Assembly (NCBI GenBank): GCA_904063045.1
Contig: CAJFCJ010000198.1
Coordinates: 1-32,399 of the forward strand
Source of the DNA: Dimorphilus gyrociliatus
Lineage: Eukaryota; Animalia; Annelida
Direction: 5' to 3'
DNA: 32,399 bases
Part shown: piece after piece, positions 1 to 32,399 of the stretch
Layout of the letters: every line of letters starts with the position of its first letter
Position numbering within the stretch: position 1 is the first letter of the stretch
The notes under the pieces: generated by a model
The model's input: the letters and a program-made list of their open reading frames with translations, nothing else
Databases searched by the model: none
Told to the model about the DNA's origin: nothing
Made by a program: the position numbers and the translations under genes

Positions 1-750
1 CACAGGTTGATTTTTCGTAACGTTTTGCTGCTTTTAGCAATACATCCACATTTAAAGTGTGTTAATTTTCCTGCAAAAGCTACGATACAATCTGTTTTGA
101 CTGTAACATCAAATTCATTTAAAACAGTTTCTTTACTTAAGTCCAGAGGATGGAATAAGGATTCATCATAACCTTTAATAAAATCATACGTTTATTGCTC
201 GGCACTTTATACAGTTGTGCTGTTTCAGCATCTACTTGTTTAGAGATGGTAATATATCATCTTAGCATTAGCCACCCTTCTATAGCAAAACTATGGTATC
301 TGTCATCTTTTACAAAGCCTTTTAAATCCGTACATGGGCAGTAATAACATATGGCACACCTGTTAACATAGCAGCATAAGGTGTAATCCATAAATGCTGT
401 GCATGGATAATATCTGGTTTAAAAGTATCTACTTCCTCTTGAACCACTTCTATATATTTATCCATGTAAGTCTTCATTTGATCATCTGATAATTCATAAT
501 AAGTTGTATTATTCTTGGATGGGTTGTAAAACATGGAAAATTGAAATCCACTTCAGGCTTTACTGTATTTGGTCCCTTAAACTTAATGACTCTTGATTCA
601 AATCCTTTATATGTCTTGTCTTCGTGTTCTGGATAAATGATTTTAACCTTATGGCAAAACTTACTAAAGCCTTTGCCAAATTTTTGGTGTACACGCCACT
701 ACAGTCCCTCCAATGGAAAATGATTATAACAAAATCTTCACACTCATCAT
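1..750 (-). CDS. GT4 glycosyltransferase copy 1, 5' part only (runs off the window edge); apparent frameshifts are 1-bp deletions
   Basis: Matches 6656-7415 except for many single-base deletions, mostly in homopolymers; ORF 322..534 matches the middle of the intact protein. Confidence 0.8.
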
Positions 751-1245
751 CCTTACTTGTAATTTATGAGAAATTTCTTGCTATAACAATAGAAACTTGT
801 TATAAAGTAGTCAGCATAAATATGCTACAAAGTAAATTTTGATAGTCAATATTAAAAGTCTTTTTCTTTGCACACATACATTTGTCAACTATAATCTCAC
901 AATAGAGAAGTAGTATTGAGCCAGGATTGTACTATTCAAAAGAGTTTTGTGGCATTGTGTGGTAATTATATAAGATTTGTTAAAGATTTTTCAAAAATCA
1001 TTAAACTAGGATAAAAGTTGTTCCCTGCTAGCTGACTGTTGCTGAACATTTGTTTCTTTTGCTCCTAACACTGCATAGCCAGAATGTTGTCTTTTTTCTT
1101 TTCTTTTAAAGAAAAAATATGTGCTACAATATGGAAAATCTTTTACTGGAGGAGAAACCTGTGTATATCTGTATGATCAGAATCAGAATCAAGTTTTTTT
1201 CTTTCAAATTATTATCATAACTCCATATATCATATATTTTCTTCA

Positions 1246-2747
1246 GGGTCAGGTGCAAACGTACTGGGTGCGAATGTACCAAGGCAGGTGTGAACATACC
1301 AGGTACATTCCCACCCTTTTCCTCTTTCTTTTATTTATTGATTTTTCATCAAATGGTTTTGTTAATAATAGATATATATGTATATACTCAGACTGTAAAA
1401 GTAATATTTTATCAATGTGAAGTATTATTTAAAAATATTAAATATTGTTGAAAAGTGAAATGGCAGGAAGTTCAATAGTGAAGGTGGTGAAATAAACTTT
1501 CACTTTGGACAGCATATACTTTCAAAGGTAAGCTGTATGTCCTGAATAAATTTGGACAAAGTGCTCTTTGTAGATTTTGAACAGGTAAATATTTAAAGCT
1601 TTTTAACTAGATTTTGATGCAAAATATTACAATTTAATATATTTTCTTTAATAACAAATTATTTCAATATTTGCTATAAACAAAATTTCAGCCATTTTGA
1701 ATATTTGGAAAGGAAGTGATTTTTTTAATATCAAGTGAATTTGTTTCTGTTGAAACAACATGGTTTCAAAGTGCAACAATTGTGATTCAAAAATTTATGG
1801 AAGGCAAAAATATTTGAAATGCTGCCTTTGTGAGAATCTTATCCATAGAAAATGTTCAGGTACATCAGTTTTCAAATATGATTTAGGCAACTATCTTTTC
1901 TTAACACATTGACACAGAAACACCTAGCATACCTGTTTGCACAAGATGTAACAAAGAAAATGTACTGTTAGCCTTAAGAAGTTAACAAATCTGGAAATTG
2001 ATCAATACAAAGAAAGTAATAAGACTTCAATGATAACAGAAGTGATCCTGCTGAGGTTAAAGATTCAACATTTGATTATGAAAGTCCTCGGCAATCAGAA
2101 AACCAATCAATGGATGTAGAAGGAACTGATGAAAATACAGAAGATGAAAATGACTCAATCAGGAGGAATGATTTTGAGATTGTACAAGGAGGAAGCAGAA
2201 AAGGACATGACATTTTATTGAATGATGGATATTCTTTTGTTGTTAAACATAAAACACTTACAACAACAATTTGGGTATGCAGTGTGAGAAGTAAGAAAAA
2301 AGATGTGTAGCTAGAATAAGACAAAATGGAAGTATATTTATTAAAGGCAATCTGGAACATAATCACAACAGAAAACCTAATTTGGAAGTAGATGTTAAAG
2401 TAAAAACTGATGTAAAAACTATTTGCAAAAGTGATAACAAAGCATCTGGAAGAAGCATTGCTGAAAAATTTCTATTATCATATGAACCTAATGCTAAATG
2501 TCTTCCTGATATCAATTACTTAAAAAGGATGGCAAACTCAAACAGACAAAAATTCAGGCCAGTTGAACCAAAAGTGTATAATTTCAACTTGAACACAACT
2601 TTTTTACCTGATGAATTTCTCCAGAAAGACATTTGTGAAAATGGAGAAAGAATCTTAATTTTTGCAACAAACCATCAGCTGAACTTATTATCCAAATCCA
2701 ACTACTGGTATATTGATGGTACTTTCCAAATTGTTAAGGATCCATTC
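1246..2747 (+). mobile_element. 5' half of a MULE (TIR remnant plus PHD-FLYWCH-partial DDE), copy 1, indel-rich
   Basis: Same sequence as 7920-9431. ORFs 2110..2310 and 2382..2819 carry the FLYWCH-like GYSFVVK...WVCS segment and YWYIDGTF. Confidence 0.85.
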
Positions 2748-3015
2748 TGGTTACTTTTCAATTTTGATGGCTATTCTACCTTCCAAATCAATGTATTGTG
2801 GCTTCATTTGAATTGTTGAATTCAATTTTTCAGGTGTATCAAAGTTGTTACATCTGTTCCAATACCATATTGTGAACACTCACTGTTTGTTTGTTTTAAT
2901 TAATTCATTATGGGTGTGTTATTATGGTTGTATTTAAATATACTTTGTGAATAAAATTGTAATTATTTTATCATATTATTAGTTGATTCTTTTAGATTTA
3001 GATATATAAAACTAG

Positions 3016-3225
3016 GTCATCATCCATTGATTGGAAGAGTTTTGTCTTAAAAAATACTTTTATATATGCCCCATATTGGCTTCAATAATGTTGAAGTCTG
3101 GGCAGTTAGCTGGCCATGAATGCAATGTTTCAACTTTCTTTCTCTTTAGGTATTCCTTTGCTCTGGCTGCTGTATGACAGCTGGGCCCATCGTGTTGGAA
3201 AATTTTCCCTCTATAATAATTGAAT
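3016..3225 (-). mobile_element. Tc1-like transposase catalytic fragment (DD35E), copy 1
   Basis: Same as 9700-9910: KIFQHDGPSCHTA...WPANCPDFNIIE. Confidence 0.8.
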
Positions 3226-3230
3226 GCAAA

Positions 3231-3680
3231 TATAGGCAAAAAGTCCCAGCCACCTTGTAAAATTTTTTGTTTTGATATTAAGCTATGCTGAATAGCTACT
3301 TTGAATTGGTAATAATAATGATTAATATGTATAAACTAATGTCCTTTACGAAAAATGATCAAAAAATTGTTTTTCTTTTATAAAATCCTGTTTTAGTAAA
3401 TACATCTCGAAAAAAGGGGTTAGTTAAAAATGAGTCACCATCTATTTAATCAAAAAAAGGGGGTTAAGCTGCATAAATCAAATAGGAAAGTATTTTATTA
3501 TAATTATATCTTTGGTTTTTCAAAAAAATAATGGTCATTGATAAAAAATTTGTTATTTGGTTGTTGAAAAATGCCAAGAAGGGCTATCATTGAACAAAAT
3601 TACCAAAATGTTTACAATTTCTAGCTTCAGTGCCCAATATATCTGGAAAATGTTTCAATTGCATCATACAATTGAAGATT
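3231..3680 (+). mobile_element. Tc1-like 5' end (TIR, leader and first ~45 codons), copy 1, joined to LRR sequence
   Basis: Reverse complement of ~20673-21125. Homology to the Tc1 ORF ends at ...HHTIEDL. Confidence 0.88.
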
Positions 3681-4810
3681 TGAAAGTTGGCCTATCATTA
3701 ATTTTTAAACAACTACTCATTTCATCAAATTCATTACAAAAGATCAATTTATGTTATTGTGATTTAGGCAAGAACAACTGTGAAACTCTATCAAATCTGC
3801 TTTCAAACTGTTCAAAAATTGAAAAAGTTAATTTAAGTTGGAATCCAAATGTTGAACACTTTTTACCTAAAATTTGCCAAGCACTTTTAATATCGTCAAT
3901 TGGACTCAAAGCTATAAACTTTTGCAATTGTAATTTGGATGGGAATAGTATTAAGAATGTTGCAGATTTATTAAAGAAATGTTGTTCTTTACAAAAAGTT
4001 GACTTTTCATTGAATAAAGATTTAAAAGACAGCTTGCCTACTATTTTGGATGGACTCTACAATTGTTGTAATACTCTAGCAGAAATTTATTTAAAAAGTT
4101 GTCTTTTAAATGGAAGTATGGCCAGAGAAATTGGTAATTTTTTAAATAACTGCCATAAAATTGAAAAGATCAATTTATCATTTAATGACAATATGGAAAA
4201 TGGATTTTTTTATATATGTAAACATCTACACAACTCTTCAAATACTCTAAAAGAAAATACAACAATATCAGAACAAATATTAAGGAATATTGCTGACACA
4301 TTAAAATCAGTGAAACAGCTGATAAAGATTGATTTCAAAGGCTGCAATTTAGAAGAGGAACAATGTAGAAAGATTGGAAAGCTTTTCTAAAGTTGCTCTA
4401 AAATAGACACAATCAACTTGGCATGGAATGTTCAGATGGGAGAAGGATTATTTAACATTTGTAAAGGACTCATCCAATCGTCAAGCTGTTTAAAAGAGAT
4501 AAATTTCGGCTGTTGTAATTTAAACAATGGGCAATGTAGACATATTGGAAACCTTTTTAAAGAATGCGCCAAGCTAGAGACAATCTACCTGACAGGAAAT
4601 CATACAACAGGCAATGGACTATTCTATATTTGTGCACAACTTCTTCATTTGTCAAATACTTTAAAATGCCTCAACTTTACAGAATGTAATTTGAGCGAAG
4701 ACCAGTCTAAAATAATAATTAACTTGTTTAAACACTGTTCAAAACTTAAAAGAATTTCTCTGGAACGGATATGGCATTGCGGAAGTGATCTTTTTGAACT
4801 AAGCAAATAG
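3681..4810 (+). pseudogene. RNI-like/NLR-type leucine-rich-repeat gene fragment with one in-frame nonsense codon (TAA 4388-4390), copy 1
   Basis: ORFs 3557..4390 and 4418..4810 are in the same frame. Alternating ~28-aa LRRs (e.g. LQKINLCYCDL / IEKVNLSWN / LKAINFCNCNL / LQKVDFSLN). No native N-terminus. Confidence 0.85.
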
Positions 4811-4894
4811 GTTGTTTAATTACACTGCTCTTAAATATTTTAATTATTCTTCTAATATTCCTGGTGATTGTTTAAAATAGTTTAGAACTAGAAA

Positions 4895-6194
4895 CTCATT
4901 TACTCAATAGATATTCTTTAAACAAAATACTGGCATTTTGTTGATTAATTTCTACTGAAATTACATTTCTTAAGACTACTTGTGGACGAATTTGAAAGGT
5001 TCTATTTGTGTGAGTACTTTGGTGCATTGATAAATGATTGGAAAGGACGAATACTGTTCTGAAGAAGGAGAAATTCCTACAATTACAATACAACAAAGTA
5101 CAATTTTGTTCAATAATTTATGAAATTGATATCAATCATCCAAGGAGTTACATTATAGAGGGGAGTAGGAATCTTGTCAAAATTTTCTTTTTAGCATCTT
5201 TTGATAAATATTGAATTCATAATATTCAAAAAACACTATTTGAAAACAGACCTAATCCTCAGTCTAGGCCTAGCATACTCTAAAAGTAATCAAAGTGCTA
5301 ATTTTCCAAAATCACTAGAAATATTGTTCCTACCCCTGCAACGAGTCACATGTGATAAGGAGAAGTGGAAAATGAAGAAAACTGAAAGTGAGAAAATGTT
5401 TTAAAAAGATATTTTGTGTGCAGTTTTTATTGAATCTAAACAATTTATGCTGTATATATAAGAGAGAGGTTGAAATGTGAACAGAGAGTGACAAGCATCT
5501 CTCACAAAATAATAAAAACAAACAGAAAAATACTTTTACAATAGATTTAAGTGTTTTAAAAAGTAAGAAAACTACTTTTTTATACTAACTGCCAAGCTAC
5601 AACTTTTTCAACAGCTATACATGATTGTTACAATTGTGCTATTGCAATACCATTAGACTGTAAAATAGAAATGGATATCTAAAGTCCAAGTATTGATAAT
5701 TCACTATATCTAAGTGCACAAAAATTCTAAAAATATGTTTGTTAAAAGGCTGCGTTGGTCTTTAAAATGGTGGAAAATGCCAAATTATTAAAAATTCCAT
5801 TGTTTAGTGGTAATAATTGAATAATGAATTACAGAGCAATCGAACAATTTCTGTCATTATTGAAAAGTTTTTATACACATTTAAATTGCCTCATGAATTA
5901 AATTATTAATTCAAAATGTAAATTAATCAATGAAAACATATCAAAAATCCTTTAGAATATTGGTTCAGTTATAAACATCACTGGTTGTACTTTGTTGTTT
6001 TGAAATTGGAGGAATTTCTGGTTTCTTACAACTGTAAGCATTCTTTCCAATCATTTGCCAATTTGCCAAAGTACTCACACAAATAGAACCTTTAGAATTC
6101 GTCCACAAATAGTCTTAGCAAATGTAATTTTGGTAGAAATTAATCAGCAAAACACAAGTATTTCATTTAAAGAATATGTATTGAGTAAAATGAG
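4895..6194. repeat. Diverged inverted repeat pair, arms 4895-5103 and 5985-6194 with a ~880-bp spacer
   Basis: Hand alignment gives ~33 mismatches and 1 gap over ~210 bp (~84%). Shared core aaaggttctatttgtgtgagtactttgg. Confidence 0.85.
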
Positions 6195-6209
6195 CAATTA
6201 CCTACAGTA

Positions 6210-7415
6210 TTACATACATAAAATTTCTTTATATAATGTTTCTACAGCTTTGATTGAATGTTCTAATGAGAAACCCTTTACTGCATATTCAGCACAGTAG
6301 GCACGTCTAGCTGCTTTATCGCTGTGTTTAAGTTCTTCCATAATGGCATCAGCCAGTTCTAAATCATCTTCTACTTGAACCAGACGACCTACTTTGCTAT
6401 CAATAAAATCTGGTAAACCACCTTGGTTAGTACCCACTACAGGTGTGCCACAAGCAAGGGCTTCAATTGCTACTAGACCAAATGGTTCTGTACGAGAAGG
6501 CACAACACTTACATCTGCAATATTGTACATTTTAACTAATGTCTCTTGATTAACGTGACCTAAGAAGTATACATGTTCAAGGTCTAAATCTTCTTTCATA
6601 CGCTTTAACACACCATAGAGTTCACCATTACCTGCAATAATTGTCATTACTTTACCACAGGTTGATTTTTCGTAACGTTTTGCTGCTTTTAGCAATACAT
6701 CCACACCTTTAAAGTGTGTTAATTTTCCTGCAAAAGCTACGATACAATCTGTTTTGACTGTAACATCAAATTCATTTAAAACAGTTTCTTTACTTAAGTC
6801 CAGAGGATGGAATAAGGATTCATCATAACCATTTAATAAAATCATACGTTTATTGCTCGGCACTTTATACAGTTGTGCTGTTTCAGCATCTACTTGTTTA
6901 GAGATGGTAATAATCATCTTAGCATTAGCCACCCCTTCTATAGCAAAACTATGGTATCTGTCATCTTTTACAAAGCCTTTTAAATCCGTACCATGGGCAG
7001 TAATAACATATGGCACACCTGTTAACATAGCAGCATAAGGTGTAATCCATAAATGCTGTGCATGGATAATATCTGGTTTAAAAGTATCTACTTCCTCTTG
7101 AACCACTTCTATATATTTATCCATGTAAGTCTTCATTTGATCATCTGATAATTCATAATAAGTTGTATTACTTCTTGGATGGGTTGTAAAACATGGAAAA
7201 TTGAAATCCACTTCAGGCTTTACTGTATTTGGTCCCTTAAACTTAATGACTCTTGATTCAAATCCTTTATATGTCTTGTCTTCGTGTTCTGGATAAATGA
7301 TTTTAACCTTATGGCCAAAACTTACTAAAGCCTTTGCCAAATTTTTGGTGTACACGCCACTACCAGTCCCCTCCAATGGAAAATGATTAACTAACAAAAT
7401 CTTCACACTCATCAT
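6210..7415 (-). CDS. GT-B fold family 4 (GT4) glycosyltransferase, 401 aa, intronless, bacterial type (BshA/RfaB-like group)
   Basis: N-terminal KILLVNHFPLEGTGSGVYTKNLAKAL (Gly-rich acceptor-domain loop); DIIHAQH; VITAHGTDL (cf. BshA TLHGTD); FAGKLTHFKG; EX7E motif EPFGLVAIE; PVVGTNQGGLPD. Confidence 0.93.
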   Translation of the reverse strand: MMSVKILLVNHFPLEGTGSGVYTKNLAKALVSFGHKVKIIYPEHEDKTYKGFESRVIKFKGPNTVKPEVDFNFPCFTTHPRSNTTYYELSDDQMKTYMDKYIEVVQEEVDTFKPDIIHAQHLWITPYAAMLTGVPYVITAHGTDLKGFVKDDRYHSFAIEGVANAKMIITISKQVDAETAQLYKVPSNKRMILLNGYDESLFHPLDLSKETVLNEFDVTVKTDCIVAFAGKLTHFKGVDVLLKAAKRYEKSTCGKVMTIIAGNGELYGVLKRMKEDLDLEHVYFLGHVNQETLVKMYNIADVSVVPSRTEPFGLVAIEALACGTPVVGTNQGGLPDFIDSKVGRLVQVEDDLELADAIMEELKHSDKAARRAYCAEYAVKGFSLEHSIKAVETLYKEILCM

Positions 7416-7919
7416 CCCTTACTTGTAATTTATGAGAAATTTCTTGCTATAACAATAGAAACTTGTTATAAAAGTAGTCAGCATAAATATGCTACAAAGT
7501 AAATTTTGATAGTCCAAATATTAAAAGTCTTTTTCTTTGCACACATACATTTGTCAACTATAATCTCACAATAGAGAAGTAGTATTGAGCCAGGATTGTA
7601 CTATTCAAAAGAGTTTTGTGGCATTGTGTGGTAATTATATAAGATTTGATAAAGATTTTTCAAAAATCATTAAACTAGGATAAAAGTTGTTCCCCTGCTA
7701 GCTGACTGTTGCTGAACATTTGTTTCTTTTGCTCCTAACACTGCATAGCCAGAATGTTGTCTTTTTTCTTTTTTCTTTTAAAGAAAAAAATATGTGCTAC
7801 AATATGGAAAAATCTTTTACTGGAGGAGAAACCTGTGTATATCTGTATGATCAGAATCAGAATCAAGTTTTTTTCTTTCAAATTATTATCATAACTCCAT
7901 ATATCATATATTTTCTTCA

Positions 7920-9431
7920 GGGTCAGGTGCAAACGTACCTGGGTGCGAATGTACCCAAGGCAGGTGTGAACATACCCAGGTACATTCCCACCCTCTTTCC
8001 TCTTTCTTTTATTTATTGATTTTTCATCAAATGGTTTTGTTAATAATAGATATATATGTATATACTCAGACTGTAAAAAGTAATATTTTATCAATGTGAA
8101 GTATTATTAAAAATATTAAATATTGTTGAAAAGTGAAATGGCAGGAAGTTCAATAGTGAAGGTGGTTGAAATAAACTTTCACTTTGGACAGCATATACTT
8201 TCAAAGGTAAGCTGTATGTCCTGAATAAATTTGGACAAAGTGCTTCTTTGTAGATTTTGAACAGGTAAATATTTAAAGCTTTTTAACTAGATTTTTGATG
8301 CAAAATATTACAATTTAATATATTTTCTTTAATAACAAATTATTTCAATATTTGCTATAAACAAAATTTCAGCCATTTTGAATATTTGGAAAGGACAGTG
8401 ATTTTTTAATAATCAAGTGAATTTGTTCTGTTGAAACAACATGGTTTCAAAGTGCAACAATTGTGATTCAAAAATTTATGGAAGGCAAAAATATTTGAAA
8501 TGCTGCCTTTGTGAGAATCTTATCCATAGAAAATGTTCAGGTACATCAGTTTTCAATTATGATTTAGGCAACTATCTTTTCTTAACACATTGACACAGAA
8601 ACACCTAGCATACCTGTTTGCACAAGATGTAACAAAAGAAAATGTACTGTTAGCCTTAAGAAGTTAACAAATCTGGAAATTGATCAATACAAAGAAAGTA
8701 ATAAGGACTTCAATGATAACAGAAGTGATCCTGCTGAGGTTAAAGATTCAACATTTGATTATGAAAGTCCTCGGCAATCAGAAAACCAATCAATGGATGT
8801 AGAAGGAACTGATGAAAATACAGAAGATGAAAATGACTCAATCAGGAGGAATGATTTTGAGATTGTACAAGGAGGAAGCAGAAAAGGACATGACATTTTA
8901 TTGAATGATGGATATTCTTTTGTTGTTAAACATAAAACACTTACAACAACAATTTGGGTATGCAGTGTGAGAAGTAAGAAAAAAAGATGTGTAGCTAGAA
9001 TAAGACAAAATGGAAGTATATTTATTAAAGGCAATCTGGAACATAATCACAACAGAAAACCTAATTTGGAAGTAGATGTTAAAGTAAAAACTGATGTAAA
9101 AACTATTTGCAAAAGTGATAACAAAGCATCTGGAAGAAGCATTGCTGAAAAATTTCTATTATCATATGAACCTAATGCTAAATGTCTTCCTGATATCAAT
9201 TACTTAAAAAGGATGGCAAACTCAAACAGACAAAAATTCAGGCCAGTTGAACCAAAAGTGTATAATTTCAACTTGAACACAACTTTTTTACCTGATGAAT
9301 TTCTCCAGAAAGACATTTGTGAAAATGGAGAAAGAATCTTAATTTTTGCAACAAACCATCAGCTGAACTTATTATCCAAATCCAACTACTGGTATATTGA
9401 TGGTACTTTCCAAATTGTTAAGGATCCATTC
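7920..9431 (+). mobile_element. 5' half of a MULE: TIR remnant 7920-~7995 and transposase exons 8441-8540 and 8599-9431 (PHD, FLYWCH, first catalytic Asp), truncated after KDPF
   Basis: Spliced MVSKCNNCDSKIYGRQKYLKCCLCENLIHRKCS/ETPSIPVCTRC. Colinear with the intact MULE up to WYIDGTFQIVKDPF, then unrelated sequence. End-to-ATG distance is 521 bp versus 529 bp in the intact element. Confidence 0.88.
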
Positions 9432-9699
9432 TGGTTACTTTTCAATTTTGATGGCTATTCTACCTTCCAAATCAATGTATTGTGGCTTCATTTGAATTGT
9501 TGAATTCAATTTTTCAGGTGTATCAAAGTTGTTACATCTGTTCCAATACCATATTGTGAACACTCACTGTTTGTTTGTTTTAATTAATTCATTATGGGTG
9601 TGTTATTATGGTTGTATTTAAATATACTTTGTGAATAAAATTGTAATTATTTTATCATATTATTAGTTGATTCTTTTAGATTTAGATATATAAAACTAG

Positions 9700-9910
9700 G
9701 TCATCATCCATTGATTGGAAGAGTTTTGTCTTAAAAAATACTTTTATATATGCCCCATATTGGCTTCAATAATGTTGAAGTCTGGGCAGTTAGCTGGCCA
9801 TGAATGCAATGTTTCAACTTTCTTTCTCTTTAGGTATTCCTTTGCTCTGGCTGCTGTATGACAGCTGGGCCCATCGTGTTGGAAAATTTTCCCTCTATAA
9901 TAATTGAATG
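9700..9910 (-). mobile_element. Tc1-like transposase catalytic fragment (DD35E), copy 2
   Basis: ORF 9744..9938: FQHDGPSCHTAARAKEYLKRKKVETLHSWPANCPDFNIIE; 35 residues between D and E. Confidence 0.82.
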
Positions 9911-9914
9911 CAAA

Positions 9915-10365
9915 TATAGGCAAAAAGTCCCCAGCCACCTTGTAAAATTTTTTGTTTTGATATTAAGCTATGCTGAATAGCTACTTTGAATTGGTAATAA
10001 TAATGATTAATATGTATAAACTAATGTCCTTTACGAAAAATGATCAAAAAATTGTTTTTCTTTTATAAAATCCTGTTTTAGTAAATACATCTCGAAAAAA
10101 GGGGTTAGTTAAAAATGAGTCACCATCTATTTAATCAAAAAAAGGGGGTTAAGCTGCATAAATCAAATAGGAAAGTATTTTATTATAATTATATCTTTGG
10201 TTTTTCAAAAAAATAATGGTCATTGATAAAAAATTTGTTATTTGGTTGTTGAAAAATGCCAAGAAGGGCTATCATTGAACAAAATTACCAAAATGTTTAC
10301 AATTTCTAGCTTCAGTGCCCAATATATCTGGAAAATGTTTCAATTGCATCATACAATTGAAGATT
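9915..10365 (+). mobile_element. Tc1-like 5' end joined to LRR sequence, copy 2
   Basis: Same as 3231-3680; homologous to the end of the element at 19532-21128. Confidence 0.88.
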
Positions 10366-10972
10366 TGAAAGTTGGCCTATCATTAATTTTTAAACAACTA
10401 CTCATTTCATCAAATTCATTACAAAAGATCAATTTATGTTATTGTGATTTAGGCAAGAACAACTGTGAAACTCTATCAAATCTGCTTTCAAACTGTTCAA
10501 AAATTGAAAAAGTTAATTTAAGTTGGAATCCAAATGTTGAACACTTTTTACCTAAAATTTGCCAAGCACTTTTAATATCGTCAATTGGACTCAAAGCTAT
10601 AAACTTTTGCAATTGTAATTTGGATGGGAATAGTATTAAGAATGTTGCAGATTTATTAAAGAAATGTTGTTCTTTACAAAAAGTTGACTTTTCATTGAAT
10701 AAAGATTTAAAAGACAGCTTGCCTACTATTTTGGATGGACTCTACAATTGTTGTAATACTCTAGCAGAAATTTATTTAAAAAGTTGTCTTTTAAATGGAA
10801 GTATGGCCAGAGAAATTGGTAATTTTTTAAATAACTGCCATAAAATTGAAAAGATCAATTTATCATTTAATGACAATATGGAAAATGGATTTTTTTATAT
10901 ATGTAAACATCTACACAACTCTTCAAATACTCTAAAAGAAAATACAACAATATCAGAACAAATATTAAGGAA

Positions 10973-11100
10973 GAGTATGGGAAAAAACGTCCTTGGGAAA
11001 AAACGTCCCTGGGAAAAAACGTCCCAGGGTGGGAAAAAACGTCCCAGTGTGGGAAAAAACGTCCCAAGGTTAGGAAAAAATGTCCCAAGGTTGGGAAAAA
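10973..11100 (+). repeat. Left TIR: 5 perfect and 2 degenerate copies of GGGAAAAAACGTCC
   Basis: Repeat starts at about 10979, 10995, 11011, 11031, 11051, 11072 and 11093. Confidence 0.92.
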
Positions 11101-11297
11101 CAAGTAGTGGGAAAAGATATTTGAATTTTAAAAAAGATTGCTCTATTTTGGGAACCAATGGCAATATACTGAGAATATAATAATTAATAATGAATATATG
11201 TTTATTAAAATGTATTAAAAATGAAAAAAGCTAAGAATGTTATACAAAGTTTAAAAGTTACTAGAATAAAGTATAAAGTATGTTAAGACACTGAGAA

Positions 11298-13296
11298 TTA
11301 TTTTGAATAGATTAATGCAATCTTCTGCAAGAGGACAGCAGATGTAATCATTCCCAATTTGTATTCATCCCAAACAGCAAATACTTGCTTCTGCTTCTGG
11401 ATGACACTTTTCTTCTGATACTTCTTTAGCCTTTTTTCTGATAGAAGTTTCTCTACAACTGGAATAAGACTTGATTCCTGTTTTAAAATATCTATGAGCA
11501 TATAAAATGACCCTTTTGCAGGAGTCTTTTCATTTATTCTTCTGTGCCATCCTTCAACATCATTGTTGGTCCTGATGGCAAGACCAAATACAGACCAACA
11601 ATTTGGTGTCCAAATTGAATGCTTAATCCAAGTACTTTCAATGTATTGGAAAAAATCCAAAAATTCATTTCTCTCAAAGGCCTCATCTTTTAGCATGTAG
11701 AAACTGTTTAGAATGGCTTCATCTGGAAGAAAAGGTAATGCCAAAACTTGTTTCAGCAGTCCTGCCTTCTTCTTTTCCATATTATATTGTTGTGTGTATC
11801 CCAAATTCTACAATAATTTAATAATAAGGCCAAGCACTGAATTTAAATATAAGCTTACTTGAATTTTTCTGTAGACAGCTTGTGTCCAATGGAAGACACA
11901 ACCTTGAATAGGAATATTAGGGTAAACTGAGTTAAGAGCACTCCATATACCTAATTCAAAATCAACTACAAATTTGTCAGGTTGAAAACCATTTGTCAAT
12001 TTTTGAATCTCCTTTTGATAAGATGAAGTTAATGAAACAGAATTAAGCAACCAAATCATACTTACTTTAAGAATCATTTTGTACACTTTTTTTTTCTTTG
12101 ATGTTAAAAAAGCAAATGCTAATGGAATTTGTTTTGCTTCTCCATCATTTTTAATAAAAGAATGAACAGAAAAAAGCTGTACAAATGGATCCTTCACAGC
12201 CTTGAAAGTGCCATCTAAATACCATACTTTACTTTTACATAATAAAGACAACTGGTGCTTAGAAGCAAATAGTAAAACTCTTTGATTTCTTACAACAATA
12301 TCACTTTGAAGAAAATCATCTGGTATAAATGTTGTATTAAGTTCAAAATCAATTTCGTTTGGTTCTTTAGGCCTTGATTTTTGCCTATTGATATTGGCTA
12401 ATCTCCTCAGATTTTCCAGTTTTGGTAGGTTATTTTCACTTTTATTTAAATTAATTAATAGATCTTCAGCAATTGCTCTTCCAGATGACTTGATGTCTGC
12501 ATTAGAGATTGCTCTCAATTCTTTTCTAGCAGAAATATTCACAATAAGGCTTTTCCTTTTGTTATGATTGTGTTCATGTTTACTCTTTATGAAAATATTT
12601 CCTTTTTGTTGAATAATAACTGGACATTGAATATTCTTATTTCTAACAGAACATCTCCAGATGGTTCTCTTGTGACTTCTAGATTTTATATTAAAAGCAT
12701 AGCCATTGTTGGTCAAAATATCTTTCCCTTTTTGACTTCCACCAATAATAATATGAAATTTGTCTGAGCTTTCCATATTCTCATTATTTTCAGTTTCATT
12801 TTCATGCAATAAATTTTCCTCCATATTAGAAGTATTGCTAACTTCTTTAAGACTACAATTGTCTTTAACCATATTATTATGAGTACAACTCAGAGCAGCT
12901 TTTACAATAGGATCATCATTGATCACATCTGATAAACTAATGAGACAATATCTTTCACTCAAACTTTTGCATGAAGAACACTTATCATCTTTCATTTCTG
13001 TAATATTAAGCAAAGTTAAATAAATGTATGTTTTACATAGTAAATATCACCTTTACAGATATGATGACAAAGTGAACATGTAGTTTCTTGAATCCTGAAC
13101 TTTTCTGCACAATTATTGCAAAATACTCTTTCAGATTCTAAATTGAAAATGAAAAAAGTGAATAATTTAATAAAAACATATAAAGAGACAGACCTTTGAT
13201 GCATTTGGCATGGACATAATCTTGGCAGTCATTGCATTTCATCTTTCTCTGTCTGCCATAAAATCTTTTATTACAATTAATACAAACAGGTGCCAT
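11298..13296 (-). CDS. MULE transposase, predicted 594 aa, 5 exons (13296-13194, 13137-13051, 12997-12066, 12011-11859, 11807-11298): PHD finger, FLYWCH, DDE
   Basis: GT-AG introns of 56, 53, 54 and 51 bp give one stop-free frame of 1785 nt. Motifs: CINC..CNDC..HAKC..CNNC (PHD); GYAF..WRC..HNH (FLYWCH); WYLDGTF (D1), VVDFE (D2), CVFH (CxxH), RTNNDVEGWH (E). Confidence 0.88.
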
Positions 13297-13709
13297 TACT
13301 AAGTTTCTGCAAAAATAAATTCACTTTCAACTATCAAATATGGCTGCCTATACAAAAATTATAAATAATAACTCACTGGAAAGAAGTGTTCTTAAACAAT
13401 GTATAATCTTGTAATATTCAATAAACTAAATCAATACCAGAGTTTCAATGCTTAAAAAACAAATTAGCCTGAAAATATGCCAAGAAATGCAAAATTTATC
13501 TTTCACTTACAGACAAGACAAGGAAATAACTCATTTCTCTTTTAATAGCATTACATAATTCAGAGAAAACTGGTAAAAACATCACAATACATATCCCTTT
13601 CTTCAAAAATATTAATATTTATTCTATAAATGAAATAAACAGCAAAGAGAAAAACATTTCTGATTATAAGTATAAATAATTATGCCAAGTATATCTTTAG
13701 CCAGGCATA

Positions 13710-13825
13710 GGACGTTTTTTCCCAACAATTAGGACGTTTTTTCCCAACAATTAGGACGTTTTTTCCCGCCCTGGGACGTTTTTTCCCAGGGACGTTTTTT
13801 CCCAAGGACGTTTTTTCCCGACCCC
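13710..13825 (-). repeat. Right TIR: 6 copies of GGACGTTTTTTCCC
   Basis: Repeat starts at 13710, 13732, 13754, 13774, 13790 and 13806. Confidence 0.92.
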
Positions 13826-14441
13826 ATTAAGGAATATTGCTGACACATTAAAATCAGTGAAACAGCTGATAAAGATTGATTTCAAAGGCTGCAATTTAGA
13901 AGAGGAACAATGTAGAAAGATTGGAAAGCTTTTCTAAAGTTGCTCTAAAATAGACACAATCAACTTGGCATGGAATGTTCAGATGGGAGAAGGATTATTT
14001 AACATTTGTAAAGGACTCATCCAATCGTCAAGCTGTTTAAAAGAGATAAATTTCGGCTGTTGTAATTTAAACAATGGGCAATGTAGACATATTGGAAACC
14101 TTTTTAAAGAATGCGCCAAGCTAGAGACAATCTACCTGACAGGAAATCATACAACAGGCAATGGACTATTCTATATTTGTGCACAACTTCTTCATTTGTC
14201 AAATACTTTAAAATGCCTCAACTTTACAGAATGTAATTTGAGCGAAGACCAGTCTAAAATAATAATTAACTTGTTTAAACACTGTTCAAAACTTAAAAGA
14301 ATTTCTCTGGAACGGATATGGCATTGCGGAAGTGATCTTTTTGAACTAAGCAAATAGGTTGTTTAATTACACTGCTCTTAAATATTTTAATTATTCTTCT
14401 AATATTCCTGGTGATTGTTTAAAATAGTTTAGAACTAGAAA

Positions 14442-15741
14442 CTCATTTACTCAATAGATATTCTTTAAACAAAATACTGGCATTTTGTTGATTAATTTCT
14501 ACTGAAATTACATTTCTTAAGACTACTTGTGGACGAATTTGAAAGGTTCTATTTGTGTGAGTACTTTGGTGCATTGATAAATGATTGGAAAGGACGAATA
14601 CTGTTCTGAAGAAGGAGAAATTCCTACAATTACAATACAACAAAGTACAATTTTGTTCAATAATTTATGAAATTGATATCAATCATCCAAGGAGTTACAT
14701 TATAGAGGGGAGTAGGAATCTTGTCAAAATTTTCTTTTTAGCATCTTTTGATAAATATTGAATTCATAATATTCAAAAAACACTATTTGAAAACAGACCT
14801 AATCCTCAGTCTAGGCCTAGCATACTCTAAAAGTAATCAAAGTGCTAATTTTCCAAAATCACTAGAAATATTGTTCCTACCCCTGCAACGAGTCACATGT
14901 GATAAGGAGAAGTGGAAAATGAAGAAAACTGAAAGTGAGAAAATGTTTTAAAAAGATATTTTGTGTGCAGTTTTTATTGAATCTAAACAATTTATGCTGT
15001 ATATATAAGAGAGAGGTTGAAATGTGAACAGAGAGTGACAAGCATCTCTCACAAAATAATAAAAACAAACAGAAAAATACTTTTACAATAGATTTAAGTG
15101 TTTTAAAAAGTAAGAAAACTACTTTTTTATACTAACTGCCAAGCTACAACTTTTTCAACAGCTATACATGATTGTTACAATTGTGCTATTGCAATACCAT
15201 TAGACTGTAAAATAGAAATGGATATCTAAAGTCCAAGTATTGATAATTCACTATATCTAAGTGCACAAAAATTCTAAAATATGTTTGTTAAAAGGCTGCG
15301 TTGGTCTTTAAAATGGTGGAAAATGCCAAATTATTAAAAATTCCATTGTTTAGTGGTAATAATTGAATAATGAATTACAGAGCAATCGAACAATTTCTGT
15401 CATTATTGAAAAGTTTTTATACACATTTAAATTGCCTCATGAATTAAATTATTAATTCAAAATGTAAATTAATCAATGAAAACATATCAAAAATCCTTTA
15501 GAATATTGGTTCAGTTATAAACATCACTGGTTGTACTTTGTTGTTTTGAAATTGGAGGAATTTCTGGTTTCTTACAACTGTAAGCATTCTTTCCAATCAT
15601 TTGCCAATTTGCCAAAGTACTCACACAAATAGAACCTTTAGAATTCGTCCACAAATAGTCTTAGCAAATGTAATTTTGGTAGAAATTAATCAGCAAAAAC
15701 ACAAGTATTTCATTTAAAGAATATGTATTGAGTAAAATGAG
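14442..15741. repeat. Second copy of the ~210-bp inverted repeat pair
   Basis: Same as 4895-6194, offset by 9547. Confidence 0.85.
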
Positions 15742-15756
15742 CAATTACCTACAGTA

Positions 15757-16962
15757 TTACATACATAAAATTTCTTTATATAATGTTTCTACAGCTTTGA
15801 TTGAATGTTCTAATGAGAAACCCTTTACTGCATATTCAGCACAGTAGGCACGTCTAGCTGCTTTATCGCTGTGTTTAAGTTCTTCCATAATGGCATCAGC
15901 CAGTTCTAAATCATCTTCTACTTGAACCAGACGACCTACTTTGCTATCAATAAAATCTGGTAAACCACCTTGGTTAGTACCCACTACAGGTGTGCCACAA
16001 GCAAGGGCTTCAATTGCTACTAGACCAAATGGTTCTGTACGAGAAGGCACAACACTTACATCTGCAATATTGTACATTTTAACTAATGTCTCTTGATTAA
16101 CGTGACCTAAGAAGTATACATGTTCAAGGTCTAAATCTTCTTTCATACGCTTTAACACACCATAGAGTTCACCATTACCTGCAATAATTGTCATTACTTT
16201 ACCACAGGTTGATTTTTCGTAACGTTTTGCTGCTTTTAGCAATACATCCACACCTTTAAAGTGTGTTAATTTTCCTGCAAAAGCTACGATACAATCTGTT
16301 TTGACTGTAACATCAAATTCATTTAAAACAGTTTCTTTACTTAAGTCCAGAGGATGGAATAAGGATTCATCATAACCATTTAATAAAATCATACGTTTAT
16401 TGCTCGGCACTTTATACAGTTGTGCTGTTTCAGCATCTACTTGTTTAGAGATGGTAATAATCATCTTAGCATTAGCCACCCCTTCTATAGCAAAACTATG
16501 GTATCTGTCATCTTTTACAAAGCCTTTTAAATCCGTACCATGGGCAGTAATAACATATGGCACACCTGTTAACATAGCAGCATAAGGTGTAATCCATAAA
16601 TGCTGTGCATGGATAATATCTGGTTTAAAAGTATCTACTTCCTCTTGAACCACTTCTATATATTTATCCATGTAAGTCTTCATTTGATCATCTGATAATT
16701 CATAATAAGTTGTATTACTTCTTGGATGGGTTGTAAAACATGGAAAATTGAAATCCACTTCAGGCTTTACTGTATTTGGTCCCTTAAACTTAATGACTCT
16801 TGATTCAAATCCTTTATATGTCTTGTCTTCGTGTTCTGGATAAATGATTTTAACCTTATGGCCAAAACTTACTAAAGCCTTTGCCAAATTTTTGGTGTAC
16901 ACGCCACTACCAGTCCCCTCCAATGGAAAATGATTAACTAACAAAATCTTCACACTCATCAT
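15757..16962 (-). CDS. GT4 glycosyltransferase copy 3, 401 aa, protein identical to 6210..7415
   Basis: The ORF track translations are identical. Confidence 0.93.
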   Translation of the reverse strand: MMSVKILLVNHFPLEGTGSGVYTKNLAKALVSFGHKVKIIYPEHEDKTYKGFESRVIKFKGPNTVKPEVDFNFPCFTTHPRSNTTYYELSDDQMKTYMDKYIEVVQEEVDTFKPDIIHAQHLWITPYAAMLTGVPYVITAHGTDLKGFVKDDRYHSFAIEGVANAKMIITISKQVDAETAQLYKVPSNKRMILLNGYDESLFHPLDLSKETVLNEFDVTVKTDCIVAFAGKLTHFKGVDVLLKAAKRYEKSTCGKVMTIIAGNGELYGVLKRMKEDLDLEHVYFLGHVNQETLVKMYNIADVSVVPSRTEPFGLVAIEALACGTPVVGTNQGGLPDFIDSKVGRLVQVEDDLELADAIMEELKHSDKAARRAYCAEYAVKGFSLEHSIKAVETLYKEILCM

Positions 16963-17466
16963 CCCTTACTTGTAATTTATGAGAAATTTCTTGCTATAAC
17001 AATAGAAACTTGTTGTAAAAGTAGTCAGCATAAATATGCTACAAAGTAAATTTTGATAGTCCAAATATTAAAAGTCTTTTTCTTTGCACACATACATTTG
17101 TCAACTATAATCTCACAATAGAGAAGTAGTATTGAGCCAGGATTGTACTATTCAAAAGAGTTTTGTGGCATTGTGTGGTAATTATATAAGATTTGTTAAA
17201 GATTTTTCAAAAATCATTAAACTAGGATAAAAGTTGTTCCCCTGCTAGCTGACTGTTGCTGAACATTTGTTTCTTTTGCTCCTAACACTGCATAGCCAGA
17301 ATGTTGTCTTTTTTCTTTTTTCTTTTAAAGAAAAAAATATGTGCTACAATATGGAAAAATCTTTTACTGGAGGAGAAACCTGTGTATATCTGTATGATCA
17401 GAATCAGAATCAAGTTTTTTTCTTTCAAATTATTATCATAACTCCATATATCATATATTTTCTTCA

Positions 17467-18963
17467 GGGTCAGGTGCAAACGTACCTGGGTGCGAATGTA
17501 CCCAAGGCAGGTGTGAACATACCCAGGTACATTCCCACCCTCTTTCCTCTTTCTTTTATTTATTGATTTTTCATCAAATGGTTTTGTTAATAATAGATAT
17601 ATATGTATATACTCAGACTGTAAAAAGTAATATTTTATCAATGTGAAGTATTATTTAAAAATATTAAATATTGTTGAAAAGTGAAATGGCAGGAAGTTCA
17701 ATAGTGAAGGTGGTTGAAATAAACTTTCACTTTGGACAGCATATACTTTCAAAGGTAAGCTGTATGTCCTGAATAAATTTGGACAAAGTGCTTCTTTGTA
17801 GATTTTGAACAGGTAAATATTTAAAGCTTTTTAACTAGATTTTTGATGCAAAATATTACAATTTAATATATTTTCTTTAATAACAAATTATTTCAATATT
17901 TGCTATAAACAAAATTTCAGCCATTTTGAATATTTGGAAAGGACAGTGATTTTTTAATAATCAAGTGAATTTGTTCTGTTGAAACAACATGGTTTCAAAG
18001 TGCAACAATTGTGATTCAAAAATTTATGGAAGGCAAAAATATTTGAAATGCTGCCTTTGTGAGAATCTTATCCATAGAAAATGTTCAGGTACATCAGTTT
18101 TCAAATATGATTTAGGCAACTATCTTTTCTTAACACATTACACAGAAACACCTAGCATACCTGTTTGCACAAGATGTAACAAAAGAAAATGTACTGTTAG
18201 CCTTAAGAAGTTAACAAATCTGGAAATTGATCAATACAAAGAAAGTAATAAGGACTTCAATGATAACAGAAGTGATCCTGCTGAGGTTAAAGATTCAACA
18301 TTTGATTATGAAAGTCTCGGCAATCAGAAAACCAATCAATGGATGTAGAAGGAACTGATGAAAATACAGAAGATGAAAATGACTCAATCAGGAGGAATGA
18401 TTTTGAGATTGTACAAGGAGGAAGCAGAAAAGGACATGACATTTTATTGAATGATGGATATTCTTTTGTTGTTAAACATAAACACTTAACAACAATTTGG
18501 GTATGCAGTGTGAGAAGTAAGAAAAAAGATGTGTAGCTAGAATAAGACAAAATGGAAGTATATTTTTAAAGGCAATCTGGAACATAATCACAACAGAAAA
18601 CCTAATTTGGAAGTAGATGTTAAATAAAAACTGATGTAAAAACTATTTGCAAAAGTGATAACAAAGCATTGGAAGAAGCATTGCTGAAAATTTCTATTAT
18701 CATATGAACCTAATGCTAATGTCTTCCTGATATCAATTACTTAAAAAGGATGGCAAACTCAAACAGACAAAATTCAGGCCAGTTGAACAAAGTGTATAAT
18801 TTCAACTTGAACACAACTTTTTTACCTGATGAATTTCTCCAGAAAGACATTTGTGAAAATGGAGAAAGAATCTTAATTTTTGCACAAACCATCAGCTGAA
18901 CTTATTATCCAAACCAACTACTGGTATATTGATGGTACTTTCCAAATTGTTAAGGATCCATTC
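17467..18963 (+). mobile_element. 5' half of the resident MULE, copy 3 (indel-rich toward the gap)
   Basis: ORF 17989..18348 starts with the PHD exon; the sequence matches 7920-9431 with scattered 1-bp deletions. Confidence 0.85.
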
Positions 18964-19056
18964 TGGTTACTTTTCAATTTTGATGGCTATTCTACTTCCA
19001 ATCAATGTATTGTGGCTTCATTTGAATTGTTGAATTCAATTTTTCAGGTGTATCAA

Positions 19057-24364: not shown

Positions 24365-25321
24365 ATGGGATTGGCAAATATATATTTAACAGTTTTTTCA
24401 TGTTCTGTTCAAGTGTTTGGCTTTCTTTTGAATAGTAATTTAATTATAATAAATATGATGAATAAAGATTTATGGAAATTACATAATTTCGGAGTTACAG
24501 CCTTAACTGTTACAGATGTTCTCTACTCTTTAGCTTTCTTTTTCTTTATTCTTTTACATGATACAAAGTTAACTTATCACACCTGTTTAATTGCATTTGA
24601 GTTTATTTTTTTGATAACTTCAGTATCGTCATTTACACTGACTCTAATTACATTTGAAAAGTTTATGGCAGTTGTAAAACCATTAACATTTTATAAAATT
24701 TGGACAACGAAAAGAGCGTTTATCCTGTTTTCTTCAATATGGTTTATCAACGTTGTTATTTGTTCACTTCCAACTTTAGGTTGGAATAATTATGAAACTC
24801 TTTTGAAGGAGGTGAATACTTTTAAATGTAATTCTCTTAATGTTTTTCCTTTTTCATTTATTTTGTTTTGGTCATTCACAAGTGTTTTACCAAATGCTAT
24901 TGGCAGTTTACTATTATACATTCCAGTATTGAAAGCAGTAAGAAAACATAGAAAAGCAATTTCCGATGTATCTAGTGATAGGAATTTAGAATCTGAAGGC
25001 AGTAGTATTCGAGTTTTAACTAGTTTATTAATAATCAATTGTTTCTTTTGGCTTATACCAGCTATAATACCAACTGACAATTATTTCAGATTGCAAGGAA
25101 TATTAAATTTGTCAGATAATAAGTTTGAATTACTCACTGACTCACTCCTATCACTTATTATTTCCAATGCAACATTAAACGCCCTTGTTCATGGGTATAC
25201 AAAATCATCAATAAGGCGACAAACCAAAAGACTTTTTCTGAATATCTTAAAAAGGATTGTTTGTCAAAAAAATTTTAGAAATACAATTCTTGTTGTAAAT
25301 AGTGTAGAAACAGTAATTTGA
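24365..25321 (+). CDS. Intronless class A (rhodopsin-like) orphan GPCR, 318 aa
   Basis: Seven hydrophobic segments; TM2 LTVTD; TM3 Cys and ITFEKFMAVVKPL (DRY variant); TM4 W and LPTLGWN; TM6 CFFWLIP; TM7 NATLNALVHGY. Confidence 0.88.
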   Translation: MGLANIYLTVFSCSVQVFGFLLNSNLIIINMMNKDLWKLHNFGVTALTVTDVLYSLAFFFFILLHDTKLTYHTCLIAFEFIFLITSVSSFTLTLITFEKFMAVVKPLTFYKIWTTKRAFILFSSIWFINVVICSLPTLGWNNYETLLKEVNTFKCNSLNVFPFSFILFWSFTSVLPNAIGSLLLYIPVLKAVRKHRKAISDVSSDRNLESEGSSIRVLTSLLIINCFFWLIPAIIPTDNYFRLQGILNLSDNKFELLTDSLLSLIISNATLNALVHGYTKSSIRRQTKRLFLNILKRIVCQKNFRNTILVVNSVETVI

Positions 25322-27649: not shown

Positions 27650-28270
27650 AGTTAGTTTCCATACATCATGCATGTAAAACAACATTACGTCTACCAGCAT
27701 TTTCAATAATTATATATTTTGCATTGTAGTTATTAAAGTCAATATTTTTCATAACATTGTAAAAATTTATCTATCTGATTTCCGTGATAAGTCCACGAAG
27801 CATATTTAAAATATCCAATGGACATCTTAAAAAAATAGATAAAATGTGAATTGCTGTTATTAGTTTTGAATTACCAAATTTTTCCGTCATGTTGAACAAT
27901 TGTGAGAACATCAGCAAAATTAATCTTGCGTGCCCTATCCAAAAAACAACAATATTTGAGAAAAGGAGAATGAATTGTTATTGATGGTATCAACGTTAGA
28001 CTCCATATCCTATTGATTGGCGCATGTCTTCACTATCTTCAACCGTCCAACGTAATCTAAAGAACTTTAAGGATATTGTTCTAACTATTACCCCAAATGA
28101 TAAAATATCTCCTGTTTCAAATCTTAATTATATATTATTAGACGCCATCACATAACTAAAAATGCAATATTTTTTGTTGATCGGAACATCAAGGGAAGGT
28201 TATCCCTTGCTGTTTGCTAGCACAAAAATAATTTTGAAATGGCCTGACGAAAACGATAAAAGTTTTCACA
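27650..28270 (-). pseudogene. Cys-loop ligand-gated ion channel (nicotinic AChR-like) extracellular-domain relic
   Basis: In correct order on the minus strand: VRPFQN, RLRWT, PINRIW, TIVQHDGKIW, CPLDI, FKYASWTYHGNQID, RRNVVLHA*CME. Stops and frameshifts throughout. Confidence 0.6.
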
Positions 28271-31219: not shown

Positions 31220-31412
31220 TAAATAACGTTAGTAATAGCCGTCAGAGGGCCAATGTATCTTTTAAACGTTACGTGCTAAGAATCCCGCTAGGCGGCCTTT
31301 TTGGCGTACGTGCAGTAACTGAATTGTCTTTACCGTCGTAATATATATCGTTAAGATATATGTTTCACGGTAACTTTTAAAATAAAGTTCTTTTCCTATT
31401 TTATTCAAAATA
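31220..31412 (-). repeat. Second copy of the ~190-bp dispersed repeat
   Basis: Inverted homolog of 21646-21836. Confidence 0.8.
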
Positions 31413-32399
31413 AATAATCTAAAGATTTTATAAATTTAAAAGAATTTTTTTGTTGAATAAAAGCCATTATTTTTGTAAACTTTCTTTTCTAAACTTGAAA
31501 AAATATCTTGAATTTGTTATTTTACATCACTTTTTTTTAAAAAAACGGACTATTGTAGAGCAGAAGCAGCAAACTTGTCAAGTGGCAATATTATTGTCAT
31601 TGCTTTAAGATTTATATCTGTAGGTTCCACAGAATTACAAATTATATTTTACTTTGAAACTAAAGTGCAATTATTATTCAAAAGATGAAACATCTCCTTG
31701 ATTACGTGTATTTTAGAAGTTGAAACAATGTAAAAAAGGTAAAAGGCAAAAGGTATTTGTATAATATAATAAAAATCTGAGAGGCAGGTTAGGTTCGATC
31801 ACTAAAATTTATGTTCGACTTAAAACATTTAACAAAAGCCTAGAAACTGCAAACCTACTGAATTCTTAAAGCTACAATAGAAAAAAGTCTTATTACCTAT
31901 AATACCAGTTTTTTAGGAATAAACATACTAATAAAATATGAAAAATCGATGGTTCTATTAAAATTGTTCGATTTCATCAAAATTTTCAGAATTGTTATTT
32001 TTACAATTTGTTTTTTATCAATATTTCAACGACATTTTTGTTGATATCAAGTAGTATTAAATTTGCATTTTATCCTAATATTAAGAATTCTATTCGAAAC
32101 ACTTAACGTTTGTATCCTAAAGAATCTATCAGTAAATTAGTGTATTCATGCGAAATACGGGGGAAAAAACCGATTGATGTTGATTATCAATCATTTCAAT
32201 CGTATATGTTGTGTATTACTTACATTGAATTCTCTGAAAAAAATACATATCGTCATTGTTTTTGAATTTTTTTTCCAACATTAGATGGAATAAGGTAGAA
32301 AACGAAATTGGGTATGCTTTATGAATTGTTTTTCAAAATTACTATGTACATTCTTTTACAACATACAAAAAGTATTTTAAGTGAAAGGCATTCAGACTG

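Follow-up and report, generated by a model that had tools for sequence, protein, structure and literature searches.

In the annelid Dimorphilus gyrociliatus, a 32,399-bp contig (CAJFCJ010000198.1, here C198) carries at positions 10973-13825 what is very likely a Mutator-like (MULE) DNA transposon of the animal FLYWCH type, complete in structure and probably autonomous. This whole contig is the window referred to throughout; genome searches were made across the 77.9-Mb, 349-contig assembly to which it belongs, contigs of which are denoted by C-numbers. Within the window, the element lies in a tandemly repeated host cassette, one unit of which is filled by the transposon and another of which has the same target site empty. 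The characters by which the MULE superfamily is recognized are found together here, i.e., a MULE DDE domain, the residues D/D/E along with CxxH and W, a target-site duplication (TSD) in the 8-11 bp range, long terminal inverted repeats (TIRs) and an N-terminal zinc finger. Few animal Mutator elements are intact, and the sole one found in the literature to have been shown to move is Muta1 (PMC5499845).

Boundaries and transposase gene

The ends of the element, GAGTAT... and ...GACCCC, directly touch ATTAAGGAA on both sides and, because that repeat is not extendable in either direction, the TSD of the window copy is exactly 9 bp. A duplication of 8 bp followed by one chance base is excluded, since the 8-mers next to the two ends differ and only the 9-bp repeat fits. 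In the adjacent cassette unit, the sequence ...acaaatATTAAGGAAtattgc... represents both insertion flanks fused exactly with one ATTAAGGAA. Both the perfect 9-bp repeat and the unoccupied target had been proposed by an earlier, sequence-only reading of this DNA, and both hold at base-pair level (Table 1). Inward of the termini, the subterminal (T)GGGAAAAAACGTCC copies are spaced 16-22 bp apart at each end, giving inverted repeats of ~120 bp, and one 66-nt arm (10979-11044) is complementary to 13754-13819 at 98 %. Tandem Repeats Finder, run on the element, found no minisatellite beyond the TIR repeats, only three tiny AT repeats. Two other identities were considered and rejected. A Pack-MULE or captured host fragment does not apply, as the gene and its untranslated regions (UTRs) account for the whole interior and no other match occurs in the window; nor does an hAT or P element, both of which make 8-bp TSDs, as the Pfam matches are to MULE and FLYWCH only.

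The interior is occupied by a five-exon gene on the minus strand, the exons of which total 1785 nt, or 594 codons plus a stop, each open in its own phase. All four introns are GT-AG and measure 56, 53, 54 and 51 bp, respectively. The stop-free 594-aa reading frame, the four introns of 51-56 bp and the 2.85-kb length given by the sequence-only reading are thereby upheld. Protein searches were done exon-wise, using a 401-aa open frame (exon 3 with intron 3 and exon 4), exon 5, and exons 1 and 2 singly. Pfam places FLYWCH (PF04500, 3.9e-10, over the curated cut-off) N-terminal to the DDE domain, which matches MULE (PF10551) at 2.2e-10, with 41.3 bits against a cut-off of 27.6; together with the TIRs, these matches bear out the earlier assignment to the MULEs. 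Searched alone, exon 1 gives C1_1 at 9.4e-6 and PHD at 0.011, both below the cut-offs, and exons 1 and 2 in order read as a C4HC3 pattern. In 11-sequence alignments of the element with ten homologues from cnidarians, bivalves, crustaceans, amphioxus, thrips and rotifers, the W/C/C/H of the FLYWCH finger as well as D267, D351, C372-H375 and, in exon 5, W71/E85 fall at invariant or near-invariant columns, and so the catalytic D, D and E and the CxxH are intact, as had been claimed. For MULEs and hATs, the published criterion is a (C/D)xxH lying 15-45 aa past the second D, with a W preceding the E (PMC5499845); the CxxH of the element comes 21 aa after its second D, hence within that range. Among solved structures, no PDB relative was found at E <= 1.

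Comparative support for the splice junctions comes from a homologue (P0001), an annotated D. gyrociliatus paralogue (DgyrCDS14598) and a diverged copy of the element on C68, so that one way in which the sequence-only reading might have failed is not borne out. In P0001, ...RKIQ (residue 405) continues directly into exon 5 sequence (residue 406 on), which supports junction 4, and the end of exon 4 is the exact point of that passage. The homologues have no counterpart of the 18 residues encoded if intron 3 is retained, and the Pfam MULE match crosses those 18 extra residues. In the paralogue DgyrCDS14598, introns interrupt the coding sequence of the N-terminal finger, a site two codons away from intron 3, and the precise site of intron 4, after ...YRKIQ; introns 1, 3 and 4 of the element therefore have counterparts in it. 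Between the window copy and the 87 %-identical C68 copy, codon positions 1, 2 and 3 diverge by 8.1 %, 6.5 % and 17.8 %, respectively, and introns 3 and 4 diverge by 22.9 % compared with 7.3 % at codon positions 1 and 2 (Fisher tests: introns versus positions 1 and 2, p ~7e-6; position 3 versus positions 1 and 2, p ~3e-6). Divergence being lowest at codon positions 1 and 2, this pattern in the aligned copies is the signature of purifying selection on the exon model along once-active lineages. If intron 1, 2 or 4 were retained, the frame would meet a stop; for intron 2, comparative support is limited to that stop. Upstream of the start codon, the 5' leader (13297-13700, minus strand) contains two GT...AG pairs in good context, GTAAGT...TTTTCAG and GTGAGT...TTTTTGCAG, both of which, from their sequence, could be candidate 5'-UTR introns.

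Copies in the genome and their mobility

The genome DNA search returned at least seven further near-full-length copies at distinct sites, with substitution identities of 99.2-99.96 %, so that the family is not one of old, diverged remnants, the other outcome that would have told against a recently moving element. Intact frames are present in three copies (window, C44 and C114) that are one to three substitutions apart, a divergence of <=0.1 %. Among the remaining copies, those on C54 and C42 are open but have lost 30 nt, in frame, close to the 3' end of exon 5, a deletion also found in the C75 copy. On C75, C105 and C251 the frame is broken by a stop or by frameshifts, and some of these defects may be assembly noise.

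A pattern made from the left terminus, allowing <=2 mismatches, has 51 matches in the genome compared with none for a reversed control, and about 40 of the 51 look like true termini. The family thus comprises roughly 40 elements at differing sites, ~30 of which are deletion derivatives with 8- or 9-bp duplications. At least eight copies have in common one internal deletion, which brings together element positions 684 and 2331; as they lie at different loci with duplications of their own, they represent a deletion derivative mobilized in trans. For 17 elements both ends are in hand, and at these distinct sites the TSD is 8 bp in eight and 9 bp in five. The expectation of near-identical copies with distinct 9-bp TSDs is accordingly borne out as to the copies, but the length of the duplication is mixed. 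No target-site consensus is evident among the paired elements.

By analogy with Muta1 (PMC5499845), the 594-aa transposase would bind the six GGGAAAAAACGTCC repeats in each TIR by means of its FLYWCH finger and perhaps also its PHD-like finger, and its DDE/CxxH domain would excise the element through hairpins formed on the flanking DNA. The free 3'-OH ends would then join a staggered target cut of 8 or 9 bp, repair of which would leave the 8- or 9-bp duplication. The transposase is presumably made and responsible for moving these copies, and may still be active.

Several observations weigh against taking the element as complete, autonomous and mobile. A word-indexed protein search yielded nothing above 46 % identity, so that neither an annotated model of the gene nor a spliced product from it was seen. 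The outermost 6 nt are unlike between the two ends (GAGTAT versus GGGGTC, read inward), an asymmetry that is kept in other copies of the family. At 12674, inside the FLYWCH-domain match, the window copy has a private change to His where seven of seven other copies have Asp. Four of the 17 paired elements, on C105, C54, C46 and C35, are without a TSD; no reciprocal flank swaps were seen among these four, and recombination between copies, alternative transposition or assembly chimeras are possible causes. Lastly, the contig is only 32.4 kb long and consists mostly of repeats, in an assembly with homopolymer indel noise.

Of the rival explanations, the one that fares best is that the family is extinct, e.g., through silencing by the host, or that the window copy itself is inert owing to its His-for-Asp change or to regulatory defects and was moved by a sister transposase; this is possible, if rather unlikely. 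The want of an annotated or spliced product in the protein search, the private amino-acid change and the stops or frameshifts in several sister copies are all in its favour, as is the strong CpG-directed decay of transposable element (TE) bodies in this genome, a hint of host action. Against it, the 594 codons and every splice site are preserved in three copies, including that in the window, at the low divergence given above, and the changed residue is in a column that is variable among homologues.

At C47:57156-62741, a near-identical copy is interrupted at element position ~830 by a ~2.7-kb insert holding a 65 %-similar MULE (C47:59426-60414), i.e., a MULE nested in a MULE. Several more FLYWCH-MULE families in the genome have many near-identical open copies, and for one of them an 852-bp exon gives identical match scores on at least 15 contigs. 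MULE activity in D. gyrociliatus has therefore involved several families and been recent.

Table 1. Positions in the window of the element and its parts, and copies of the element on other contigs
Feature	Position	Strand	Remarks
Whole MULE, 2853 bp	10973-13825	- (transposase gene strand)	Bounded by TSD and empty-site alignment; genome copies have the same end bases
Left TSD, ATTAAGGAA	10964-10972		Same 9 bp as at 13826-13834 and, in one copy, at the empty site
Right TSD, ATTAAGGAA	13826-13834		Abuts element end
Unoccupied target in adjacent cassette unit	4279-4287		Flanks joined with one 9-mer
TIR, gene 3' side	10973-11100		Terminus GAGTAT, then six subterminal ~15-bp (T)GGGAAAAAACGTCC copies
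TIR, gene 5' side	13709-13825		Six inverted (T)GGGAAAAAACGTCC copies; terminus GGGGTC on minus strand
Exon 1 (ATG 13296-13294)	13194-13296	-	First half of C4HC3 PHD-like zinc finger
Exon 2	13051-13137	-	Last CxxC of PHD-like finger and CxxCHH stretch
Exon 3	12066-12997	-	FLYWCH zinc finger; first catalytic Asp, codon 12215-12213
Intron 3, 54 bp	12012-12065	-	In frame, stop-free, GTAAGT...AG
Exon 4	11859-12011	-	Second catalytic Asp 11963-11961; CxxH 11900-11889
Intron 4, 51 bp	11808-11858	-	
Exon 5, including stop	11298-11807	-	Conserved Trp 11597-11595; catalytic Glu 11555-11553 in RTNNDVEGWH
AATAAA polyadenylation-type signal	11201-11206	-	91 nt past stop; pattern match only
Copy on C44			3 substitutions in 2853 versus window copy; all exons and splice sites intact
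Copy on C114			1 substitution in 2782 versus window copy; cut by contig end; all exons and splice sites intact
Copies on C105, C54, C42, C75, C251			11-21 substitutions in about 2700 (0.4-0.75 %) versus window copy

Filled and empty cassette units

The host DNA around the element is a tandem cassette of ~6.7 kb. Upstream of the insertion, 1-4287 and 6656-10972 differ by two substitutions and 34 gaps, 26 of which are in homopolymers; downstream, 4279-9526 and 13826-19056 differ by three substitutions; these are followed, still in register, by a third unit that is truncated. The homopolymer length differences between units are long-read noise. The element is antisense within a weak leucine-rich-repeat-like open reading frame (ORF) of the cassette, below Pfam cut-offs, that spans 3557-4387 in the empty unit. 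Across the genome, the cassette is found at least 11 times at 99-100 % identity on several short contigs, with both orientations on C112, and is therefore a recently amplified repeat itself. The sequence-only reading had inferred a recent duplication of the host DNA; the near-identity of the units stands, and a simple local duplication does not.

The 601 bp around the site run uninterrupted, at 99-100 % identity, in at least nine places (C268, four times on C112, twice on C98, C229 and the empty unit of the window), and C343 has a partial match to this 601-bp empty site. The target is filled once and empty at least ten times, which means that the insertion came after the cassette had spread or is allelic; given that the flanks are identical, the claim of a very recent insertion is sustained. 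As the contig is short and rich in repeats, the side-by-side filled and empty units could be mis-joined alleles. In that event, the element is real and the tandem pair is a product of assembly, either an allelic insertion or reads of different cassette copies strung together, and the pair says nothing on the order of duplication and insertion. Such an outcome is improbable. It is favoured by the window being an entire contig, by the presence of the cassette at 99-100 % on the other short contigs C112, C98, C268, C229 and C343, and by the unit differences being nearly all homopolymer indels, a typical long-read error. On the other hand, the third unit is in the same register, and the excess of empty sites with identical flanks upholds a recent insertion regardless. 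That the reading frame belongs to a domesticated, host-serving gene derived from a MULE is vanishingly improbable: the frame is intact and FLYWCH-MULE proteins have been co-opted as animal transcription factors (PMC10027918), but the frame lies in an element that has TIRs and TSDs, occurs in many copies at non-homologous sites and has non-autonomous derivatives, and a paralogous site is empty.

The cassette also holds a FLYWCH-only half MULE at 8793-9500 as well as an ORF of 401 aa, present at 6210-7415 and again at 15757-16962.

Known relatives and CpG depletion

Muta1 of Aedes aegypti, a member of the Phantom/Muta group described by Liu and Wessler in 2017, is 3198 bp long, generates TSDs of 8 or 9 bp and encodes a transposase with FLYWCH and DDE domains; its 145-bp TIR consists of a terminal motif and nine 12-bp subterminal repeats (PMC5499845). 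Experiments with Muta1 showed that its protein binds the repeat, that cutting proceeds through hairpins formed on the DNA next to the element and that the 3'-OH ends are joined to a target; Muta1 activity has been demonstrated both in yeast and in vitro (PMC5499845). In architecture, the D. gyrociliatus element is like Muta1: it has one transposase gene, the product of which carries FLYWCH towards its N-terminus and DDE towards its C-terminus, it makes duplications of 8 or 9 bp, its size is about 3 kb and its long TIR is made of a terminal motif plus subterminal repeats (six of ~15 bp in ~120 bp compared with nine of 12 bp in 145 bp). It differs in that its protein is longer (594 versus 504 aa) and has an additional PHD-like finger at the N-terminus, its gene is interrupted by four short introns, and the outermost 6 nt of its two ends are asymmetric. 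The Phantom/Muta group as a whole (group 20 of Dupeyron et al. 2019) has animal hosts, TSDs of 8-10 bp, TIRs of 18-613 bp and either no finger or a FLYWCH or SWIM finger (PMC6446971, Table 1); compared by description only, the architecture of the element fits this group. Rehavkus, a Repbase group known from insects and the leech Helobdella that served as MULE outgroup in PMC6446971, resembles the element in its annelid host, 9-bp TSD, long TIRs and single ORF; its transposase has a PHD finger, where that of the element has a C4HC3 pattern with a Pfam PHD score below cut-off on exon 1. However, the element is without the minisatellite before the 3' TIR that defines Rehavkus, as judged by Tandem Repeats Finder, and this contradicts a place in Rehavkus; nor is a FLYWCH finger, such as the element has, given for that group, and the element also makes TSDs of 8 bp.

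Within D. gyrociliatus, the DNA transposons have been reported to be Mariner and MULE, with MULEs making up 1.50 % of the genome, and its TEs to be either old or very recent expansions (PMC7854359). The closest proteins to that of the element, which include three other MULE families of D. gyrociliatus, are only 39-46 % identical, and so the element represents a family of its own. It shares with the PHD-FLYWCH-MULE families of DgyrCDS14598 and DgyrCDS14672 the order of domains and introns at homologous positions; its protein identity to these is only 40-43 %, and the protein collection includes no annotated model of the gene of its family. DgyrCDS14598 is itself encoded in the assembly, with an exon-by-exon identity of 97-99 %.

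Since MULEs and very recent TE bursts were already published for D. gyrociliatus, the element adds a member to a known kind of transposon, and knowledge of how MULEs work is unchanged by it. It provides a base-pair-level record of the 'very recent expansions' that the genome paper gives only in aggregate (PMC7854359). Its 2.85-kb length, three intact near-identical copies, clear repeats and filled/empty pair recommend the element as a candidate for practical use in excision assays and, possibly, in annelid transgenesis. If the family is transposing now, it would join Muta1 as one of just two animal MULEs whose activity can be demonstrated, and would offer a compact candidate tool for work on spiralians.

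The element is also strongly depleted of CpG, with 14 CpGs observed compared with 67 expected, and 13 of the 14 are inside the TIR repeat motif. In the 2.6-kb interior there is one CpG compared with 54 expected (observed/expected 0.02), and GpC is normal. The observed/expected ratio is 0.06-0.07 in a second MULE family, 0.22 in the cassette (1-6655) and 0.82-0.95 at the unique end of the window (28001-32000), the last being near the published genome-wide value of 0.9; these latter two values serve as the baseline. In the DNA compared, extreme depletion is thus limited to the transposons and the cassette. Among copies, CpG sites vary 3.4x more than other C/G sites (11.5 % versus 3.4 %; p = 7e-11), and 36 of the 40 CpG-site differences are transitions. 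This pattern looks like methyl-CpG-type decay aimed at TEs. D. gyrociliatus has been published as having negligible adult 5-methylcytosine and no DNMT3. Taken jointly, the data may describe a family that is transposing now, under a methylation-like, CpG-directed pressure on the element and with selection keeping CpG in the ~12 repeats predicted to bind the transposase; this combined reading is doubtful and is offered tentatively. If it is true as regards CpG, transposase binding or silencing is possibly methylation-sensitive.

In the non-repeated part of the contig, at 24365-25318 on the plus strand, lies an intronless ORF of 318 aa with a domain of the rhodopsin family of seven-transmembrane receptors (Pfam 7tm_1, 2.8e-18).

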